Shown here one piece after another: positions 19,505 to 38,310 of a stretch of 64,000 nucleotides of DNA. Origin of the DNA: Basidiobolus meristosporus CBS 931.73. Its lineage: Eukaryota; Fungi; Basidiobolomycota. The notes under the pieces were generated by a model. It was not told where the DNA came from, searched no databases, and worked only from the letters and a program-made list of their open reading frames with translations. Location of the stretch: the NCBI GenBank assembly GCA_002104905.1, contig MCFE01000045.1, positions 1 to 64,000 on the forward strand, written 5' to 3'. Every line of letters begins with the position of its first letter. Within the stretch, counting starts at the first letter, position 1. A program made the translations under genes and the position numbers.

Positions 19505-20356
19505 TTACTTGGTTGCAACAGCAACCCAAGCAACCATTGGTAGGGAAACGGAACCGTCATCACCGTGTTGTGCAATTTTGGGATTTTTCAGGACTTCAAG
19601 CACAGCGGCATCCCACTTTTCAGTTTGCTCAGGGGACCAGGATTTAGTTAGATGAGAATAAAACGATTCCTTCAGTAATGATGCAAGATCATGAATGTCA
19701 CTTCCTCTGTAGCGTGCGGGTTTCTCATAAATCTCAACGTTGTCAAAGCCCGCAGTTTGTAATACCTCTGCAAGGGTTTCCTTTTCATGCCATTCTTTTT
19801 TTAGAGGCACCTCAAAAGGTTTTTCACCTGGACTGATGGCATTTTGAATTTCATGCAAGGCAGGAAGGTATCCGAGAGATTTCCATATGGATACTGTAGC
19901 ACTTCCACCCTTCTTGAGAGTACGATAAATCTCTTGTGCGCCTTTAAGCGGGTCTGGAAACATGAAGATCCCCATGTTGGTGAACGAATGAGTGAAGATG
20001 CTATCTTGAAAGACAAGCTTTTGTGCATCCATTACTCCCACTTCGACAACACTACTATACCCCCGATCATCGATACGGCCTCTCAATATGTCTGTCATAG
20101 GCTTTGACAAATCCACAGCATGGATTTTAGGATTATTGCTGTTATCGTTGAGAGCAGGTTGAGTTTTCAAAAGCTCAAGAGTGACTATTCCCGTCCCGCA
20201 AGCATTGTCGAGGATTTTGGAAGAGTTGGTTATAGGCTTGATGAGAGTTATTATGTCTGATGCTATATCTCGGGTACAGCCACCGGTTTTCCTGTCATAC
20301 TGTAGTGCTTGTGATTCATAATTCATAAAGGAAGGTAGGTTTGTGGAAGAGGCCAT
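19505..20356 (-). CDS. Class I SAM-dependent methyltransferase; intronless
   Basis: 283 aa; KILDNACGTGIV motif I, AVDLS, VMDAQKLVF, FTNMGIFMFPDP. Confidence 0.93.
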   Translation of the reverse strand: MASSTNLPSFMNYESQALQYDRKTGGCTRDIASDIITLIKPITNSSKILDNACGTGIVTLELLKTQPALNDNSNNPKIHAVDLSKPMTDILRGRIDDRGYSSVVEVGVMDAQKLVFQDSIFTHSFTNMGIFMFPDPLKGAQEIYRTLKKGGSATVSIWKSLGYLPALHEIQNAISPGEKPFEVPLKKEWHEKETLAEVLQTAGFDNVEIYEKPARYRGSDIHDLASLLKESFYSHLTKSWSPEQTEKWDAAVLEVLKNPKIAQHGDDGSVSLPMVAWVAVATK

Positions 20357-22667
20357 TGCTGAATTAGTAATCTATATCATTGACCCTGTCCTCGTTTTAT
20401 ACAATCCGCGATCTACGTCATGCCCACTTTGAGGGTACACACCCTCCAATTGCACTCGGAGTAATCATCGAGTGTATTGATTGGGTCGTACTCACTGGTA
20501 GGGTACACACCATCCAAAAGGGACAATCTTGAGAATGCTTCGTAAGCTCTCACTGAGCATACGGATTGATTGGGTTTGGAATGTAACTAAATGGTCACCA
20601 CTAACACCGCTGTAACCAAGGGCACAATATTATTCCATTCTTCCGAATCATTGATTTTACTTATTTTGTCGCCAGTAACCTGTCAGGGGTCTATATTACT
20701 GCGGTCAGTAACACAATTTGCTCTGGGGCATTTTCAGCTTGGCTTCGTGATTTGGCATTCATCCTAACTGATAAATTGGGTATACTGATTGGGTTAAATT
20801 GATGGGCTGAATCATAGCGTAAAGGGAGTAAGACTGCACTTGGATTGCTTATAGCCCATAAGGAATACCTATTCATTCGCTAATATACATACCTGAAGCA
20901 AATTGGGACAATGCATCGCAATACTATAGGACAATTGCAAACGATCAATGTGATCTTCTAGCTCTGGCCCTAATAAGCTCCAGTATCCCGAAAATGGACC
21001 AGCAAATTGTACAATAACCTGTCCAACACGCAAGAAGAGAAAACAGCTTAGTTTATTTGTCTGATAAGCTGTCCCGTCGGAAGAAGTCTATACATTACCT
21101 AATACAGTAGCGGTGGTTTGAAGCCCGAGAAACGAAACAATACCTGCCGACATTGTGTGCTACTGCGGAACCCAACCCATATCAATATTTCCCGAGTTTT
21201 AGTTTTAAATTAAAATTGATGTGTAACTTGGAGGTTTATCTGGGTACCTCATCAGTCATCATTCTGTATGGCAAAACCGTAACTTAACTCGAGTACCAAA
21301 ATCATTGGTAGTTTGGTGCGTACCTTGGCCGTTGGAGGGTAGTACCTCATCAGCTAAATTATTGGATCTTGGTCTGTTTCGATATTCTATCAGTCGTTGT
21401 GGTGCAATATCTGATGACCCTAAGCTGGATGATGATGAAGGTAATGCCAAATGGTATATCCGAAATCTCTATCTAGTACAGGGACTAGGGATCTCGATTT
21501 TTACCCACCAAACCTATCTGGTCAATTTGTTGCTCATAACGTTTTGCCTTGGAGTTGGGTTTAATATATAGAATTTCCCAACCTCTTTCACTTCCATATT
21601 TCTGTTTGGCACCTTGATGTGGCTGGTGGAAGTAGCACTTCGCATGACTAGTGACCTAAGTACCTCTTGGGCTACCAGCATGTAAGCAATCTAGTCAATA
21701 CCACATTAGTGATAGAGATATTTCCATTAGCCATTTACACTCAGGTGATTGTTCCAATAAATGCCGATTACCTTGGAATCAATTGGTACCATATATGGCA
21801 TGCTGCGGTGTTTCTAGCATCGAAACCTTTGGTTTAGTGTCTGAGCTTCACAATCAAGAAGAACTACTGATCGTTCATATATAACGTCAGTTTTGGCGAT
21901 TTATAAATCTCCTCACCATAATTCTTTCAACCTTACGATACATATAATACCAATGAACTTGACTGATAACGAATATTAAAGCCATTCAGAATAATCCCGC
22001 TTTCTTTGGAACGCCCATTAGACGCCACAATGATGGGATTCTGTCAATGAGAATTAATGCATAGTATCATGAATTTAAATGTTTGTATATCTATGTATAG
22101 AATTCAAATTAATCAAATCGAGAAAAAGATATTTATGACTCCTGACAATCCCATAATATACCTGATTCCGGATCTGGATTTAAAATAATGGGGATTCTCT
22201 CTGTTGAAAATCAATTCTCAGTAGGAAACTTTTACCTGTTATTTTATAAATAACATATAGTTTTCTTTATGATGCAAACGGGACTCATTACTTACTAATG
22301 ATTAAAAGAACCCAGGTACACTCGGATTGCAACCCGGGTTTGTATCGTCTGCTGACTTGAGAATCTCTCTTCAAATCTCTGGAAATTATTAATAGTCCCC
22401 TCAACTTCTTAAACTCTGCATTATAAGGTTTCATACGAGTTCTCAGTATGCAATAACATTCGAGATACTAGGAAATACTTGAGTTGGTAGACTTTGTAAA
22501 CTTGATGAACATCAATCTAATTATTCATGCGAAAAGTTCTTGATAGATCACAGATTTAAAGTGTCTATATGCGCATTTAATGAAATCAAACATCAATATT
22601 GTATTTGGGTTGCTTTGATAATTTTTACATAGATTAAATCTACTTTTCGCAATCAAATCCTTACGTT

Positions 22668-23940
22668 ATGTCGGCTCGAGTATCCGTAGAGAGAGCAACT
22701 CGTAATCGACTCTATAAGAGCTCTCCTCTGGCAAAAAACATTACTATGCAAAGCAACATCATAGATAATTTAGGTTGTGGTGAATGTAGCCGTTCATCTG
22801 ATCACCTAGTGAAAGCTCTCCCAAGGCGTGCTAGCATAGTGATAGAGCCAATAAATGTAGTTGCTCCACTAGACACAGAAGAAGAAACGGATCACATAGA
22901 ATCTGCCGAAGGTCTCCAAGAAGATTTCTTCACTCAGCTTGAAAGTTTAGATTGTAATGCTCTAAGCGCTATATCTACCAGTAATCCCACATTCAACAGT
23001 ATGCTAAACGAGAATACCTCACATTCATTGACAGGCATGTGATATTCTAATAATGTCCCGTGCTATTCTTCTGTTGCACTTATTAAACCCTATAAAACGC
23101 CAATATAGAGCCAAAGCAATGCACAGAAACTTTAATAAGGCAAGAGACTCCGAAACCGTGCCTATCTGAGAAACGTGAAAAATGTGAAGTTTCTTTCACC
23201 GTTACCATTATGCTAGTCTAATTTTTCAGCATCGTTCACTAGCGACCTGGCTTGACAAGCAAGCTGAATTACATAGCAAAAGCCAATCGATAATTAGTGA
23301 TACATCGTGCGAGCTTTCCAATGAAAAAGGAGTATCTGGAAAAATCCGGACAGCGAACTCTCTTTTGATTGATGATACAGAGGATCCTTTTGGCTTCACC
23401 GTGGCTGAGAAGCGAATCAAGATGAAAAAGAAACAAATTTCACAGATTTCCGAGACCCTGATCACTCCCCCATTGAATGAATTAATTGTACACTTGAAAA
23501 TTCCATCCCCAATGCAGGACCAAAATGAAATATCCTGCGAAGGTGTATCCTTCAGACCCTCCAACACGGAGAGTAATGATGAAGCACCATTACTTCGGAA
23601 AAGGGAAAATCAGCGTCACACCACGAACAAGAAATGTAGTAGAGAACCTTTTGTGGAAATAATTGTCAAGGTGCGTTCATCTGAATCCTTGGTCTTTCAT
23701 GCAACCACAATCTCAAGAGCTCGAATTTATTATAGGCTTCGGGAAACAATCGAAAGCGAAATCAAAAACGAAGAACTAGAGGTAAACAAGCATTGAAGAT
23801 CAAAGTAGGAGATACATTATATTTGATTACTACAAGATTCTTCTAATATTCATTAAAAGATGAAAGGGGAGAAGGTTGAACAGTCTCTCTACTTCAGTGA
23901 GATAGACAAGTTCAAGCTAGCTGAGGAATACGTATATTAA
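22668..23940 (+). CDS. Sororin-like cohesion regulator (FGF motif plus C-terminal Sororin motif); multi-exon
   Basis: Model: 22668-23034, GC-AG intron 23035-23108, short exon, exon to 23670 carrying DPFGF (FGF at 23389-23397), exon 23736-23804, last exon 23860-23940 MKGEKVEQSLYFSEIDKFKLAEEYVY*. The last two junctions are canonical and in phase; the 5' exons are less certain. Confidence 0.7.
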
Positions 23941-24207
23941 TATATTTGCAAAGATGTAAGATTAATTGTACCCTCCTTTGACATCAATAAACTCATCATT
24001 CACAACCCTATGGAACTAGGCAGTGTAATAGCACAGGTATCCATTTATTCTTAGACGGTAATTGTCTGATGAACCTGATACTCGGTATATCACAGAGTAG
24101 AAGCAAATTGGGGACAAAGTTGGGCACACTCACGGAAACAAAAGGAAATGCTGGGAATCTCTTATTGGGCGTATCACTCTGATTGAATTGCAGGTATTTA
24201 GTCGGAT

Positions 24208-25440
24208 TCACGAGTTGAGGTACTGATCATAGAGGGCCCTTCTTACTATCCCAGTGAAGCCATATAATATAGCATTGGTAAGGCCAGTAAGCTGTGGAAT
24301 CGATTGAAGCAACTCAAGCGTGAAAAGGCCAATACCAAGAGTCTCCAACAGACGGATAAGTAGTCCTGGGAGGGTGATTATCACGTACACCAAAGGGTAT
24401 AAGTAAACCCTCCTCATAGCCATGGCGATCTGTTCGTTATTTTCCGTGGAGAACTCCGGTTTCATGCTTGACTTTTCTGGAGCATCAATGGACTCATTTT
24501 CCGGCAGATTTTTGATGTGGATGCTCACTACCACTAGATTTCCCTCGCTTGATTTATCGTTACCATTCAATAGCATCGTGTCGTACAGCAGTTCACTGTT
24601 TGTGAATTGGCCATCACCGAAAGCTTTTCGCCCCAACCCTTTTGCGTCAAAATAACCGGTATCCATTTGGCGGGTCGTTTTGTAGTAGACACGTAGGCTG
24701 CCATATAGATAGCCATATAAAAGAGCAATTGATACAATAATTACAAAGGGGATACCAAGAGATAGCACTGCTCTGATCCACACAGGATCACGCGGCACAC
24801 TGCACCAGTTCCCACTATCTGTACAGAATGAGCAGGTTAGATATTATTGAATGAGGGCAAAGGCTGAAATTGGTACCTAGTGTGAATCCACTAAATTTAT
24901 ACCCAACGAGCGCTGAAATATTTGGAGCAAGCCATATAAACGTGAATACAACAACTCGGTGGCGAGTCAAAAGCGGTTCATAGCTGGCAGAATTAAGCGG
25001 CCCCTTCAAAACCCTGATTGTCACCAATGCAATTGCTAGGACGGTGAAGTCTCGGGTCTTCAAAGCATTAGTTATCAAGTCGAGGTAGGAAGTAGCGGCT
25101 GTCAATCAGCCCTTACCAGAGAAGAGTATTGATAGATGTATCCATTGATAGTACAAAACGCACCGACAGGGATGTTGCCGTTAATTATCAGCAGAAGACC
25201 TGATATGGAGTTGTTTAAAGAATAGATGAAGTCTAGGCCAGGGAATCCATGAGTGAGGTGACCTCGGATTTATGGACGATTGGACATTCACGTACCAGAT
25301 ACAGCCAAAGAGCATATCAGTTGATGGCGGAAGGTTCCTGTGATGGGTAAGAACATACTACAGACGACCATGGAGCCACTGCCAAGCATGCTGAGCACAC
25401 TGCTCACCAAGATAACAATTTGAATAAGGAAAGGAGACAT
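24208..25440 (-). CDS. G protein-coupled receptor, Git3/cAMP-receptor-like; multi-exon
   Basis: Spliced MSPFLIQIVILVSSVLSMLGS...FRHQLICSLAVSDFIYSLNN...FCTING...GNWC...RRVYLYPLVYVIITLPG...GLTNAILYG; seven hydrophobic segments. Confidence 0.85.
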
Positions 25441-31698: not shown

Positions 31699-32463
31699 TT
31701 GTTATATAAAGACAATGGAGGCAACCCCGGACCTTCAATGAGCCCGCTAACAACCCAGAGTCTTTCAAACATGGGATGGGACTTCTACTTTCCTAATGCT
31801 GCTGGCGACAGGTCCTACCTTCAGCTGGATTACGCTGCCATCGTTGATCAGACACAGATGACTTGGCCCAACTCATTAATCGACTCATTGCTAACCAATT
31901 CCGAACCTAGTCATGATCCCTTGGTGTCACGGCCTGTGAACCAAGACGTGTACAATCCCATGATACCACCCGATCTCCTCGGTGAGAATCTTCCCTTGCT
32001 ACAGGCTTCGTTTGATCGCACACAGCAATTTGAGTTCATCCACTGTAATACAGAATTGATCAATGCTCCCTCTCGAAAGAAGCGTTGCCGGAGCCAACCC
32101 AAGCCTGAGGAGCACGAATCCAAGCTAAACCACATCTCACATATCCCATCCCCTCCGGACACTCCACCGCCGGAGCTTGACTGCTTCTCGGATAGAAAAT
32201 CCTCCAGCGCACCGAATCAATCTGACGACCCCAAGAAGCTGAACAGGCCCAAAGACCGGACTTACCCATGTGATTTTTGTCAACGAGTGTTCGCACGAAA
32301 GTATGATCTAGAACGGCATCAGAGATTGCATACCGGATACAAGCCGTACAAATGCGTCTATTGTCACGAAGGTTTCACCAGGGTGGACGCACGTCAGCGA
32401 CATTACAGAAGCCACAGCTGTAGACACCCCATTATCATCGTACCCCCTCCCCCGTTGTCTTGA
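31699..32463 (+). CDS. Two-finger C2H2 zinc-finger transcription factor, divergent from the previous one
   Basis: CDFCQRVFARKYDLERHQRLHTGYKPYKCVYCHEGFTRVDARQRH; start may be MGWDFYF. Confidence 0.9.
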   Translation: MLYKDNGGNPGPSMSPLTTQSLSNMGWDFYFPNAAGDRSYLQLDYAAIVDQTQMTWPNSLIDSLLTNSEPSHDPLVSRPVNQDVYNPMIPPDLLGENLPLLQASFDRTQQFEFIHCNTELINAPSRKKRCRSQPKPEEHESKLNHISHIPSPPDTPPPELDCFSDRKSSSAPNQSDDPKKLNRPKDRTYPCDFCQRVFARKYDLERHQRLHTGYKPYKCVYCHEGFTRVDARQRHYRSHSCRHPIIIVPPPPLS

Positions 32464-33095
32464 CCCTCAGCCTCATGTTACTGGCACTGACACTGACAAG
32501 AAATTGTCGAAATTCAATGTAAAATACCTCGGCAATACTGTAAGATCCTGCTTCGAAATAATCCATTTCTCATCAATCTCTGCTTGTCCAATATACTTCG
32601 CCTGATCGGAACCAGTGAGACAAAATGGAAACATGGAGCCAGAGCCAGAGCCAATTGGACATACGGTTACACTGGCCTTGGCTGAAGGTGGGTTGTTACC
32701 TGGATTGGGCGAACCGCTATCTAGAAATGGCCATATGAATTCCGAATCGATTGCATTTGGGTGGCGTGCTGGTCTGTGAGTGATTGGAACCTGGGATTCG
32801 TGGCAGTGCGCTCTGTTTGTTAATGTTGGGGATTATCAAGATCCCGGAAAGCCGGTCTTCGATCGGCCATCACCCGGTCATCGCCGGTATTTTCATGTGA
32901 TGTTCCAGTATGGGTTTGTTTAATGTCCACATCTATTAAGTCCGGTGAATTACTAATTTAGGCGAGGGCACTGGCAATGATTATGACCGTATTACAACTA
33001 TACAACAACTGGAAGCGTGGTGGTGGTGGTGGGGGGGGGGACATGTGATATTAGAGATTAAAAATTTCGACGGAACCGTCGCCTCACATATCTAT

Positions 33096-36000
33096 CTAAG
33101 CATCTGTGTCTTGCGTTTCTGCTTTGAGGCTGGATGTTCTGGACATCGGGGTGGCCACCCGGGGCGCTACTTTGGGGCTTTGCGTATCCTGGGCCGTAGA
33201 TGGTGTAACCGGTCTCGAGTTGATACCGGTCACACCAGAGGTGGATCTTTCCAGTAGTGCGATCCTTTGCTCCATAGCGTGCACGTACCGTCTGGCTTTC
33301 TCCATCTCCATCTCCTTCATCATCAGGGCTTGCTTGTAGTCCTGCTCCTTCATGTGGTACATCATATCTTGTCTGCGAACGTATTCCACCATGTCTGTGC
33401 ACTTCACCGTCAACGAATACACCTCTTGCTGCATGTTCATCAGGAGAGTGACCAACTCGGATTTCTCGGTGAGCAGAGTTTGTACGAACTTCAGCATGTC
33501 ATCGTGCCCCATATTCTGCAGATCCGCAAATCCTGGGGGGTGCATGCCCATGGCGTTGGGCATGCTCGGCATGGTGGGTGGCATGGGCATTGCACTGTTC
33601 GGGGCAGCCGCGGCGGCGGGTGGCTCCATAGCAGGTGCTGGGCGAGCCATGCCAGTAACACTCTCCGGTGGAGTGGCTATGCCATGAGCTCCGGGAGCGG
33701 ATTCCACTTCAGGAACTGATCCAGCATGTATAGGGCTTGTTGGGTTCTTGCCTTCATTGGGTGGGTTATCAACACGTCGCCATGTCGATGCTGTATCGGA
33801 TGGTTTCGGGGGATGGTCCCTTTTGGTTTGTTGTTGAGACTGAGCAGAGTTGCTTTTGGCAATTCCAGGTGGCGGATTCAGCTTTCCTGCAGTGGCAGTG
33901 ATCGACTCAGGTTGCGTAGTGGAAACATGTGGAGAAGGGGTTCGTGCAGGTGGATTGGGTTTGGCGAGTTTAGGTGCTTTCTCCGGCTCAGGTGCTGGCA
34001 AGCTAACAGTATCGGCGAATGAAAGTGGCTTGCTGGGTGGGACAGGGTTCTTGGTGGTTTTCGTTGGGCGATTAGGTGCAGCGGCTGCCTTTTGCGTTTT
34101 CCCGGTCGCACCATTCGGTTTTGCTGCAACTGCAGTATCGGTCTTTGGCTTGTCTGAAGCACTATTGGTGGTGGGTGAGCTTTCCACCGAGACCTTGGTT
34201 TTAACCGCCAATTCGGTTACTGGCGGTTGGGAGGTGACGTGCGCAAATGATAACCCAGGTGGAGGTGATTGGGATTTGGCTGCCTTGAGCTTGGGAGGCG
34301 GGATGTAAGACTCTGGTGCACGGGGCTTCTCTGGCTGTGTCACGGGGGCTTTGGGTGCTGATGAGGAAGCCTTAGCCTCTGGCACATTAGGCTTGTCGGA
34401 TTTTCCTTGAGGTTGCATGGAAGGGGCTTTAGAGGCTACAGGTGAAGGTGTGGATTCTGCTGCATCTGCTTTTTCGGACTTGGCTTGGGGTTGGGTACTG
34501 GTCGCCATAGGGATCGCGCGGTCAGCTGGTGGAAGTTGGTCTGCCTTATTTTGACTCTCGTTGCCCTTCACCCCAGCTGTAGAAGCCACTTTCGAGAGGA
34601 GTGGCTTTGTGGGTTTTTCCTTAAGTTCCTGCGATACTTGTGGTTTACTGGGGGCTTTTGCAACATTGGTTGTGTTGATTGCCTCTGGCAGCTTTAACTT
34701 TTCTTCCACTGGGCTTGACGCAGTGGAGGAAGCAACACTGGTGTTGTCAGCAGCATTCTTCTTGTTCTTCTTCTTCTTCTTCTTGTTTGCCTTGCCCTTC
34801 GCTTCCGTATCCAAATCGGAAGAATCCAACGAATCTGTGTCGTTGTATATGCCAAGAAGCATCCGCTCTTTATGCACAGAGACGCGTTCTTCAATCAAAC
34901 GAAGGCCCTCTCGGAGGAAAAGTTTTCCCAAGACGGCGCCAAGCGTAGTGCGACCTGTGCTGACGCCTGCATCAAATTGCTCCTTGATGTCTTGCTTGCG
35001 AGCTCTAATCGAATCGACAAGCTCTTGGTGCTGCTCGATTAGCTCCTTCAGCTTGGCAGGTTCGAGATCTTCCGCGTGGAGCATTTGTACACCCAAACAT
35101 GGAACCAAAATCTGCGATAACTCCCGGGAAGAGAGGAAGGTTTTCATTTGGGAAACACACCAGATTCTTGCCGCTTGGCCGAGTGCCTCTACCCTCTTGA
35201 TCTTTTTCTTGAAATCCTTGTTGGCGGCCTTCTCGAGGCGTCCGTGCAAGGTGGATTGGGACTCGTTCAACCAAGCCTCCTTGATGCTGTCCAGCTCCCC
35301 ATAGATCTCGGTCAGCTTCACCCCAAATTCAACATCCAGCTGAGATAGCTTCGCCTCCATCTGCTGGTTCAGTCCCTGCAGCAGCTCCAGCACCTTGTCC
35401 GATTTATTCTCCAGCTCAGCCTGGAACTTCCCGGACCCGTTGTTCCTGTAATGCTCCCGGGCAAGATTGACTACAGACGTGGAGGCTTGGAAGAGATCCC
35501 GAATCAATTGCTGGCAGAGCTCAATCTGTGGCTGAAGGAATTCTTCTTTCCACGACTCGAAGCTCTGTCGCACATTGCTCAGGAACTTGAAGAAGGTGTC
35601 GTCGATCTCATCGGCGGTTGCGGTGGATGATTTGTCACTCTTTTTTCCCTTGGATTTTTTGTGGATCTCAGCCACCGGTGACCAATAGTCGTTGAAGGTT
35701 TGGAGGATCTCCTGGTGTTTCTGGTTGAAATGGGATACCTTCTGGAAGCAGCCCTCCCCGGCAATATCCGACCGAACATACTCGATCTTTTTGATTTCGT
35801 CCAGGAAGGCGCGTGTGTTGTCCCACACCGAGCCCAGCTGCTGTAGCATGGCGGCTCCAGAGGACTTGGCCTCCTTGGCTATGGCGGAATTGATGATATT
35901 CTGGAAGGACTCTAAATCTGAGGGGGTATTATCTTTCGTTGGAGAATGTTCACAAGTGGGATTGTCATGGTTGGCAAGGATCTTGGGAGTGATGGTTCGA

Positions 36001-36575
36001 AGTAGGGGGAAATCCGCCGCTAGAATGGTAAGTTGCGACTTCTCGCTCTCCACTTTGAGTATAAGTTGACTGGGATCTTCTGGATCTTTGGTCAGGGCGA
36101 TGGCTTCAGGAGAAGCGTCGTGAGTGATGGGGGCGAAGATCGCATCTAACGCGAGAGTGGTGGCCGATTTTCGAACAAGGTATTCGCCCACCATATCATG
36201 GATGTACATTAGGATACTTTCCCCATCTTTCTCCTGGTCTAATCTGGATTGGAGGTCCTGCTCAAACTGGTGAATGAACTCTTTGACTTTCTCTCTGGGT
36301 GGGGTGACGACCGAGACGTCCGCCGCCTTCTTGCGGGTTTTGTTTCCTACGGAGAAGTGTTTTTTGTGAATCAGTTGGGCCCATTCTCGGCAGTAGAAGC
36401 AGGCGTAACCGTCGCAGGCTCGGAATTTGTTGACCTCTTTCGAAAGATTTGAGGCGTCAATACGTATGTCCGTGATAGGCTTTGAAGAGTCTCCCTTAAG
36501 AACACCAGGCTTGACCCTTAGGGCGATCATTTTGTTGACGATGGCGGTGGGATTTAAAACAAGATCGTTGGCCAT
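33096..36575 (-). CDS. Large hypothetical protein: coiled coils, Lys-rich patch, long Pro/Ser/Ala-rich disordered region
   Basis: 1159-aa open frame. In-phase upstream exons are possible (KKSLILINLDGHLV|YIIFFSLNM), so the start may lie near 37.0 kb. Confidence 0.8.
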   Translation of the reverse strand: MANDLVLNPTAIVNKMIALRVKPGVLKGDSSKPITDIRIDASNLSKEVNKFRACDGYACFYCREWAQLIHKKHFSVGNKTRKKAADVSVVTPPREKVKEFIHQFEQDLQSRLDQEKDGESILMYIHDMVGEYLVRKSATTLALDAIFAPITHDASPEAIALTKDPEDPSQLILKVESEKSQLTILAADFPLLRTITPKILANHDNPTCEHSPTKDNTPSDLESFQNIINSAIAKEAKSSGAAMLQQLGSVWDNTRAFLDEIKKIEYVRSDIAGEGCFQKVSHFNQKHQEILQTFNDYWSPVAEIHKKSKGKKSDKSSTATADEIDDTFFKFLSNVRQSFESWKEEFLQPQIELCQQLIRDLFQASTSVVNLAREHYRNNGSGKFQAELENKSDKVLELLQGLNQQMEAKLSQLDVEFGVKLTEIYGELDSIKEAWLNESQSTLHGRLEKAANKDFKKKIKRVEALGQAARIWCVSQMKTFLSSRELSQILVPCLGVQMLHAEDLEPAKLKELIEQHQELVDSIRARKQDIKEQFDAGVSTGRTTLGAVLGKLFLREGLRLIEERVSVHKERMLLGIYNDTDSLDSSDLDTEAKGKANKKKKKKNKKNAADNTSVASSTASSPVEEKLKLPEAINTTNVAKAPSKPQVSQELKEKPTKPLLSKVASTAGVKGNESQNKADQLPPADRAIPMATSTQPQAKSEKADAAESTPSPVASKAPSMQPQGKSDKPNVPEAKASSSAPKAPVTQPEKPRAPESYIPPPKLKAAKSQSPPPGLSFAHVTSQPPVTELAVKTKVSVESSPTTNSASDKPKTDTAVAAKPNGATGKTQKAAAAPNRPTKTTKNPVPPSKPLSFADTVSLPAPEPEKAPKLAKPNPPARTPSPHVSTTQPESITATAGKLNPPPGIAKSNSAQSQQQTKRDHPPKPSDTASTWRRVDNPPNEGKNPTSPIHAGSVPEVESAPGAHGIATPPESVTGMARPAPAMEPPAAAAAPNSAMPMPPTMPSMPNAMGMHPPGFADLQNMGHDDMLKFVQTLLTEKSELVTLLMNMQQEVYSLTVKCTDMVEYVRRQDMMYHMKEQDYKQALMMKEMEMEKARRYVHAMEQRIALLERSTSGVTGINSRPVTPSTAQDTQSPKVAPRVATPMSRTSSLKAETQDTDA

Positions 36576-37054
36576 ATTGAGTGAAAAGAATATGATATAC
36601 TACACCAAAAGAACAGAGTTGAAAGGAGAGCAGTGGGAAATCTATCACCACAAGTGCGAATTTACCACCAAATGCCCGTCGAGATTGATTAAAATCAAAC
36701 TTTTTTTCTACCCGATTAACCATTTCTTAACTATCTTGCGTAAGTTTCCGCTTTGGTATGGGTGGGAAATACCTTCCTTGGGTCGATGTCTGAGGAATAG
36801 GGAGGACTTGGGCGGTCGATAATTGGCACAGCTTGACTGTGTCTGACATCCGAGTCCCTGGATAGAACCGCCCACCTCTACCAACCCAGCAACTGCGACT
36901 ATCGGGGCTAAACCACATGAGGTGGTCAAAATCCCGATAAGCATGAATCGCTTGCTGATTCAGCTGATAATGAGGGGATTTCATTTCATCAACGACGTCA
37001 TAACCCGCTTTAAATGCCTCGGACACATGCCGTGGACCATTGAACTACTACACG

Positions 37055-38310
37055 ATGGCCACACACATTTTGATCCTAGGAGGGGGAGCGGCTGGTATAT
37101 TGTCTGCGCTGAAGCTTTCCACCATCAAGAGTCGATACGACCTGGAAGTCACCCTGGTGGATCCGAAATCCTACTTCGAATACACCCCCGGAATCATCTC
37201 GGTACTGGGGACCAGGCTGGACGAACTCGAGAAGAGATTTGAGGCCATCACTCAAGCTTATGAGACGCTTCTACCTTCTTGGGGGATCAAGTTCGTCCAA
37301 GGGGAGGTGGAGGAGGTAAACGACTCGGAAGGTACTTTGGATTTCTCTAGAAACGGTGTCCGTGCAGCCAAAACTAACCAACCACTTTTCAAGTCATCCT
37401 TACGTCCCAAACCCATCTGGCCTACACGTATCTGATCGTCGCTACGGGCTCTTCGTACCCGTTTCCCTTCAAACCCACCACCACGCAGCTAACATACGCG
37501 GAGCGACTCGAAGCACTCCGGGCCGACAGGGCAAGCCTCGAGGCAGCCGAGCGAGTACTATGCGTTGGTCTGGGTCCGGTGGGCGTTGAGATGGTAGGTG
37601 AGCTGGTTGGCACCAAACAACTGACTGTCGTTCATGGGGGTACCGAGGTATTACCAAGGCTCGGCGGGGAAAAGTTTGGGAACAAGGTGTTGAGCGTGTT
37701 GAAGAAGAACCATGCCCACGTGATCCTGGGGGAAAAGGCCGAGGAGCAACCAAGCGCGGACGGTCAGTCGACCAGAGCCTTCGTCACCGACAAGACTCAC
37801 CAAAGGTTGGAGGCCGAGAAGGTCTACATCAGCAACGGGCTTCTCCCCAACACCCGCTGTCTGGTCCGGAACTACGCCGCCTCTCTAAACCGCGGCTTCG
37901 TCCGGGTGAACGAATACTTCCAGATCCCCGGCCACGAGAAGATCTTCTGCATCGGGGATATCATCGACATCGACGAGGAAAAGCTCTACTTCACCGCCCA
38001 TATGCAGGCCGTCCATCTGTTCAAGAATCTTTCGGCCATACTTGCCGCCCGTTCCGCCGGCCAGGAGCCAACCCTTGCCCCGTACCCCGGTGTGCGCCTG
38101 GCCGTGGTGCTCAGCATCGGACCCTCCCGGGGGATCACCTACATAGATCCCCTCGTGAGCATGGTCGGGTTCGGCCGAGGCAGCCTGTTGGCAGGAGTGA
38201 TGAAGTGGTGCATCGAAAAGATCACCATGGAGCCGTCGATCAAGATGTGGATCAACGAGGGCCTGTATTTCGTCCAGAAGCACCGGACCCTGAAGGCGAA
38301 GCTCGACTGA
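37055..38310 (+). CDS. AIF/AMID (FSP1)-like FAD-dependent pyridine nucleotide-disulfide oxidoreductase
   Basis: MATHILILGGGAAG; intron 37332-37393 joins to YTYLIVATGSSYPFP, VGLGPVGVEMVGE, IFCIGDI. Confidence 0.9.

Follow-up and report, generated by a model that had tools for sequence, protein, structure and literature searches.

Sororin, as it has come to be defined, is a short disordered protein with a box at its very C-terminus and a K/R cluster ahead of it (PMC11148194; PMC10656103; PMC12758814), the cluster and the box being separated by a polar linker of 10–20 residues (PMC11148194). An FGF motif lies upstream in vertebrates and Schizosaccharomyces pombe and is lacking in plants and Sordaria, and so is not universal, while KEN and YSR are confined to animals, both being absent from S. 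pombe Sor1 and from AtSORORIN, and KEN also from Sordaria Sororin (PMC11148194; PMC12758814). F299, V302, D303 and Y305 of Sor1 are each essential in S. pombe, and YFRDIDAFE is the Sororin domain of plant Haspin (PMC11148194). Sor1 was first seen at an E-value of about 1 (PMC11148194), and a later survey found that no single HMM captures all orthologs. A 2025 preprint (10.1101/2024.01.07.573240) takes Sororin back as far as the last eukaryotic common ancestor and warns of convergent short motifs. Its Supplementary Table 1, where counts are at the level of species, has two Sororin, two WAPL, two Eco1 and one PDS5 for ‘Basidiobolus meristosporus B9252’ (JGI Basme2finSC), and one Sororin for Mortierella, two for Neocallimastix and none for eight other early-diverging fungi.

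The window considered here is a stretch of 64 000 nucleotides from Basidiobolus meristosporus CBS 931.73, contig MCFE01000045.1 of assembly GCA_002104905.1, and its coordinates are those of the contig. One gene within it (Table 1) is, judging from its sequence, a good candidate for the Basidiobolus counterpart, or ortholog, of Sororin/Sor1, with a product likely to be a short, mostly disordered nuclear protein of linear motifs.

A spliced gene and its Basidiobolus ranarum ortholog

The locus overlaps the deposited gene K493DRAFT_346090, whose product ORY03505.1 is a ‘hypothetical protein’ of 182 aa without a Pfam domain. It was recovered via a word-indexed protein search with the open frame 23188–23793 as query, scored over exon 3, and was the sole match. 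Rebuilt from the window, its exons are 23053–23059, 23109–23183, 23354–23670, 23736–23804 and 23860–23940, and splicing out 23671–23735 and 23805–23859 reproduces the deposited protein exactly. These two introns had been proposed in a sequence-only reading of the stretch; they are GT-AG, in phase 0, present in the deposited model and at the same places in Basidiobolus ranarum. The strings quoted in that reading, DPFGF, RKRNQKRRTRGK and EQSLYFSEIDKFKLAEEYVY, the latter with its TAA stop read at 23878–23940, are all where it placed them.

Table 1. Features of the locus and of its two flanking genes, in window coordinates
Feature	Position	Strand	Basis or remark
UbiE-type methyltransferase gene	19505–20326	-	Deposited annotation
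Exon 1, ATG at 22668	22668–23038	+	Absent from deposited model; B. ranarum match; third-position-biased differences
Conserved N-terminal island, PRRASIVIEPINVVA.LDT.EE ... QEDFFTQLE.LD.N	22812–22988	+	B. ranarum alignment; third-position bias
Intron 1, GTGATA..TATAG, 70 nt	23039–23108	+	Donor forced, acceptor inferred
Exon 2, 49-nt micro-exon, inferred	23109–23157	+	Reading frame stays open between exons 1 and 3; least certain part
Intron 2, GTGCCT..TTTTTCAG, 72 nt, inferred	23158–23229	+	Deposited model uses intron 23184–23353 there
Exon 3, with DDTEDPFGFTVAEKRIK and EPFVEIIVK	23230–23670	+	Stretch 23354–23670 common to deposited model
DDTEDPFGFTVAEKRIK block	23371–23421	+	In exon 3
FGF	23389–23397	+	Within DPFGF
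EPFVEIIVK	23644–23670	+	In exon 3
Intron 3, GTGCGT..TATAG, 65 nt, phase 0	23671–23735	+	In ORY03505.1; B. ranarum intron at same position, after EIIVK
Exon 4	23736–23804	+	In ORY03505.1
K/R patch RKRNQKRRTRGK	23751–23786	+	In exon 4
Intron 4, GTAGGA..AAAAG, 55 nt, phase 0	23805–23859	+	In ORY03505.1; B. ranarum also has a phase-0 intron before the last exon
Exon 5, 26 codons and TAA	23860–23940	+	Conserved C-terminus; regex match
Sororin-box-like tail LYFSEIDKFKLAEEYVY	23887–23937	+	In exon 5
Git3-type GPCR gene	24208–25105	-	Pfam Git3 E 0.003 on ORF 24211–24798, below curated cut-off

The sole relative found is KAK9766908.1 (‘hypothetical protein K7432_003659’, 405 aa) from B. ranarum, which an exhaustive phmmer search with ORY03505.1 against 1.84 billion representatives retrieved at E 3.7e-4. 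A word-indexed search with a profile (A1) matched the two Basidiobolus proteins only, and no second B. meristosporus relative appeared in the word-indexed searches, that with profile A1 included, or in phmmer against the 1.84 billion representatives. Synteny accompanies the protein match: in both species a Git3-type receptor gene, a gene for a product of ~240 aa and a Zip transporter gene lie downstream on the opposite strand. Five exons make up the B. ranarum gene, one of its introns following ...EIIVK and another immediately preceding the last exon.

Identity between ORY03505.1 and the B. ranarum protein is 32% over the BLASTP alignment, and the conserved islands are, in order, an N-terminal one of RRAS/IVIEPINVV and an acidic DFF helix, DPFGF, EPFVEIIVK, the K/R patch and a C-terminal F.EIDKF.LAEE. 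At the N-terminus both proteins begin MS[AS]R, and the window ORF at 22668–23038 is 53% identical to the B. ranarum N-terminal part over 75 residues (E 8e-23). The FGF block, DDT[ED]DPFGFT.AEKRIK, is identical at 16 of 20 positions, and EPFVEIIVK is so at nine of nine despite five silent changes. The last exon has 12 of 20 residues in common with the B. ranarum C-terminus (E 4e-6), where the tail reads HFVEIDKFELAEEFVF. For the K/R patch it is the place that is kept, B. ranarum having there a K/R/S-rich stretch that is not alignable with RKRNQKRRTRGK.

Third codon positions hold 67 of the 115 nucleotide differences between the two species in five conserved blocks totalling 108 codons; by NG86 dS is saturated between the two Basidiobolus sequences. 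Since the differences in every conserved block are mainly at third positions, the comparison indicates that the locus is under coding constraint in these frames, in exon 1 as in the last exon.

Within exon 1 an acidic stretch, LDTEEETDHIESAEGLQEDFFTQLESLD (22869–22952, + strand), has LDTQEEQEYIDAVDTDIQEDFFTQLEKLDD as its B. ranarum counterpart. It resembles residues 38–64 of the human splicing factor ESS2, with the pattern LD.EEEYI......IQ.DFF...EKL, at a non-significant E of 1.2 in a PDB profile search, and the likeness may reflect a short motif common to both or chance alone.

Sororin-type motifs: descent or convergence

The order in the protein is that of an FGF, the K/R patch, a polar linker and then a box at the extreme C-terminus (LYFSEIDKFKLAEEYVY-stop). 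In the C-terminal string F-S-E-I-D-K-F-K-L-A-E-E, the F, I, D and F stand at the spacing of Sor1 F299/V302/D303/Y305, and against the animal consensus FxE[A/hydrophobic][E/D]x[F/Y]ELx(hydrophobic)E seven of the nine defined positions, counted by eye, are matched and two are not. No counterpart of the animal box's upstream half, [WFY]xxx-hydrophobic-N, can be made out in the Basidiobolus tail. From RKRNQKRRTRGK to the box phenylalanine there are 17 residues in B. meristosporus, and the linker in B. ranarum has ~34. A regex for the Sororin box, for which random sequence would give 0.005 matches per 64 kb, has the exon 5 tail as its sole match in the window; it was written after the peptide had been seen and a whole genome was scanned, so on its own this counts for little. 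FGF alone is uninformative, with 11 occurrences in the window versus 10.7 expected, and its flanks in Basidiobolus differ from the vertebrate [S/T]-hydrophobic-FGFExL. KEN and YSR are absent from all exons and from the B. ranarum ortholog, which for KEN bears out what was first remarked of this locus.

The protein is short, ~336 aa in B. meristosporus and 405 aa in B. ranarum, and AF2 renders the latter as mostly disordered (mean pLDDT 48, with 269 of its 405 residues below 50). It places helices at the N-terminal acidic island (residues 99–131, pLDDT 74–78) and right after the FGF, and no confident C-terminal helix or structure for the box.

Profile searches are silent on the family. Neither PF25220 Sororin_C nor PF09666 Sororin_middle of Pfam gave anything at E<=10 with the exons, ORY03505.1 or the B. 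ranarum protein, HMMER filters discarding most weak matches. The sequence-only reading had been prepared to fall if the terminal peptide did not score against the Sororin profile, and no Pfam Sororin score was obtained for it at E<=10. Such failure is not decisive, as it is normal for non-animal Sororins, Sor1 itself being the case in point. None of the Pfam, PDB sequence and phmmer searches ties the locus to a named Sororin with statistical significance, and no Pfam domain reaches its curated cut-off in ORY03505.1 or the B. ranarum protein; the gene model was searched exon by exon and by way of the deposited protein and the ortholog. Sub-threshold Pfam matches to SOBP, Ead_Ea22 and the like were rejected as matches of composition. 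The PDB sequence searches, with ORY03505.1 and with profile A1, yielded only BCCIP (E 2.5) and ESS2 (at the E given above), neither of them significant.

Comparison by language model gives a different kind of lead. Among the neighbours listed for ORY03505.1 are a chordate Sororin cluster at 0.88, a plant Sororin_C cluster at 0.87 (rank 4) and an arthropod Sororin_middle cluster at 0.79, the top Sororin clusters (0.87–0.88) having 184–185 shared features, and among those listed for the B. ranarum protein are an arthropod Sororin cluster at 0.81 and a chordate one at 0.76; all lie below the Atlas score of 0.9, under which a match counts as ‘a lead only’. For both Basidiobolus proteins, Sororin families are the only Pfam-named ones among the neighbours listed.

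Is the likeness to Sororin one of descent? We think it rather unlikely that this is a Basidiobolus-specific disordered protein with a role in another pathway and that its Sororin likeness came about by chance or convergence. Such an origin would fit the lack of any significant HMM or BLAST link to a Sororin, an FGF no rarer than chance, a family that as detected has two members, both from Basidiobolus, and the fact that its strongest conserved blocks, RRASIVIEPINVV, QEDFFTQLE and EPFVEIIVK, are not known Sororin motifs. It would however have to account for three Sororin features that co-occur in the order expected of the family, sit at the appropriate end of the protein and are all kept between species. 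It would also have to account for Sororin being the sole named family among the language-model neighbours listed for two proteins with just 32% identity in the BLASTP alignment, and for an independent study (10.1101/2024.01.07.573240) scoring Sororin as present in B. meristosporus. The proposal of a sororin ortholog is partly supported, by architecture, by conservation in B. ranarum and by language-model neighbours, and goes without backing from the Pfam Sororin models. Descent from Sororin remains the reading that we consider likely to prove right, resting as it does on motif architecture, conservation and similarity of a non-alignment kind, and not on a significant profile match.

The 5' end of the gene and its annotation

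The ORF beginning at 22668 runs into a stop at 23040–23042, so at least one further intron is needed, with its donor at 23039, which is the sole GT to be had after the conserved block and ahead of that stop. Here the sequence-only reading, right as it was in its strings and in the placing of its introns, fell short, for its two introns alone leave the 22668 ORF unconnected with the exons downstream. Intron 1 and the first intron of the deposited model end at one acceptor, 23108. Enumeration of splice sites gives 89 open joinings between 23039 and the FGF block, so the path is not unique; the preferred model has five exons, with the plan and spacing seen in the B. ranarum gene. Its exon 2 parallels the 72-nt exon 2 there in position, the exon 2 sequence itself not being conserved. 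The model has 1008 coding nucleotides and 336 codons for amino acids.

None of its four donors, GTGATA, GTGCCT, GTGCGT and GTAGGA, is of the GTAAGT-type consensus; the B. ranarum gene has one GTAAGT donor, beside three that start with GTTTGT, GTACCG and GTACTG. GC content in the window is lowest, at 0.369, in the bin that holds the locus (22001–24000), and it rises to 0.51–0.52 within 32001–38000.

Taken together the comparisons tell us that the gene is real, that its 3' end is spliced as first proposed and that it starts at 22668. ORY03505.1, whose model leaves out ORF 22668–23042, lacks ~150 N-terminal residues, the 5' third, with the best-conserved block among them, and the true product probably has ~336 aa encoded in five exons, as against the 182 aa deposited. 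That the deposited model is nonetheless the true product, ORF 22668–23038 being a 5' leader or a small gene in its own right, is improbable. JGI models are often transcript-guided, the introns on the 5' side of this one (23060–23108 and 23184–23353) are each GT-AG, and the joining of exon 1 to exon 3 has the ambiguity just described. Against it, in B. ranarum the N-terminal block and the FGF and box parts belong to one annotated protein of 405 aa from five exons, exon 1 evolves as coding sequence, and the N-terminal 27 residues of the deposited protein have no counterpart in the ortholog. That there is no gene at all, chance ORFs having been joined via chance GT-AG pairs, is scarcely credible, weak donors and low GC content notwithstanding, given a deposited model, a syntenic ortholog with conserved intron positions and a third-position bias in substitutions.

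With the five-exon model, then, what had been suspected of the annotation needs dividing. The gene was not missed, K493DRAFT_346090 already having both 3' introns and the tiny last exon, while the suspicion of mis-modelling was well founded, the conserved first exon having been omitted from the deposited model. To call the gene hidden was an overstatement, the 2025 preprint counting two Sororin for the B. meristosporus JGI proteome, and yet as deposited it is ‘hypothetical’ with its 5' end missing. What results is a correction of the gene model for ORY03505.1 and a name for two ‘hypothetical’ Basidiobolus proteins. In the deposited annotation a 2.7-kb stretch without genes, 20327–23052, separates the UbiE-type methyltransferase gene from K493DRAFT_346090, and exon 1 of the corrected model occupies the last 385 bases of this gap.

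The downstream Git3-type gene has a deposited model of 152 aa (24208–24666), where its syntenic counterpart in B. ranarum encodes 365 aa, and it too is probably under-modelled, or decaying.

Proposed role and relation to known Sororins

By analogy with the Sororins already studied, cohesin would be the docking partner of the K/R patch and the C-terminal box, either at SA2/STAG2, as published interaction data would have it, or at the interface of the Smc3 head with the Scc1 N-terminus, as in published AlphaFold predictions, and that of DPFGF would be Pds5 or the cleft in the C-terminal domain of Wapl. Wapl would be kept from opening the Smc3–Scc1 gate, and sister-chromatid cohesion would in consequence be held after replication. 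S/T-P sites and the conserved RRAS site may allow control by mitotic kinases. One can go further and envisage the extra N-terminal module (a RRAS site of the basic-kinase type with IVIEPINVV, and the acidic DFF helix) and EPFVEIIVK as new elements that bind cohesin, Pds5, SA or SUMO and replace the animal YSR. We think this distinctly unlikely; if true, the N-terminal module and EPFVEIIVK would give this early-diverging fungus a Wapl antagonist that is wired differently.

The novelty is low, this being a new member of a known family and probably one that the preprint had already counted, and no long-standing question is opened or closed by the Basidiobolus gene. It does furnish an early-diverging fungal example with an FGF, in support of Sororin being older than animals, plants and Dikarya, a view that the 2025 preprint already states.

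How does the Basidiobolus protein stand beside the known members? As in vertebrate Sororin/CDCA5 and insect Dalmatian, an FGF comes first, a basic stretch next and the C-terminal box last, and the core F-x-E-hydrophobic-[DE]-x-F-x-L..E matches; the vertebrate Sororin and Dalmatian clusters are the nearest named ones among the language-model neighbours listed for the Basidiobolus proteins. Unlike them, it has no KEN, no YSR, no recognisable upstream half of the box and no Pfam score. S. pombe Sor1 (SPAC9E9.05, 313 aa; PMC11148194) is of like size and largely disordered, and has an FGF, a K/R cluster and a C-terminal box and is without KEN; like the Basidiobolus protein, it is undetectable at standard significance thresholds. 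The second aromatic of the box is Y in Sor1, whereas in Basidiobolus it is F, as in animals and plants, and relative to the published description of Sor1 Basidiobolus adds the conserved N-terminal island and EPFVEIIVK. AtSORORIN is without an FGF and Basidiobolus has one. The Sororin domain of plant Haspin, set against the YFSEIDKFK of Basidiobolus, has Y, F, I, D and F in common with it, together with an equivalent pair of D and E.
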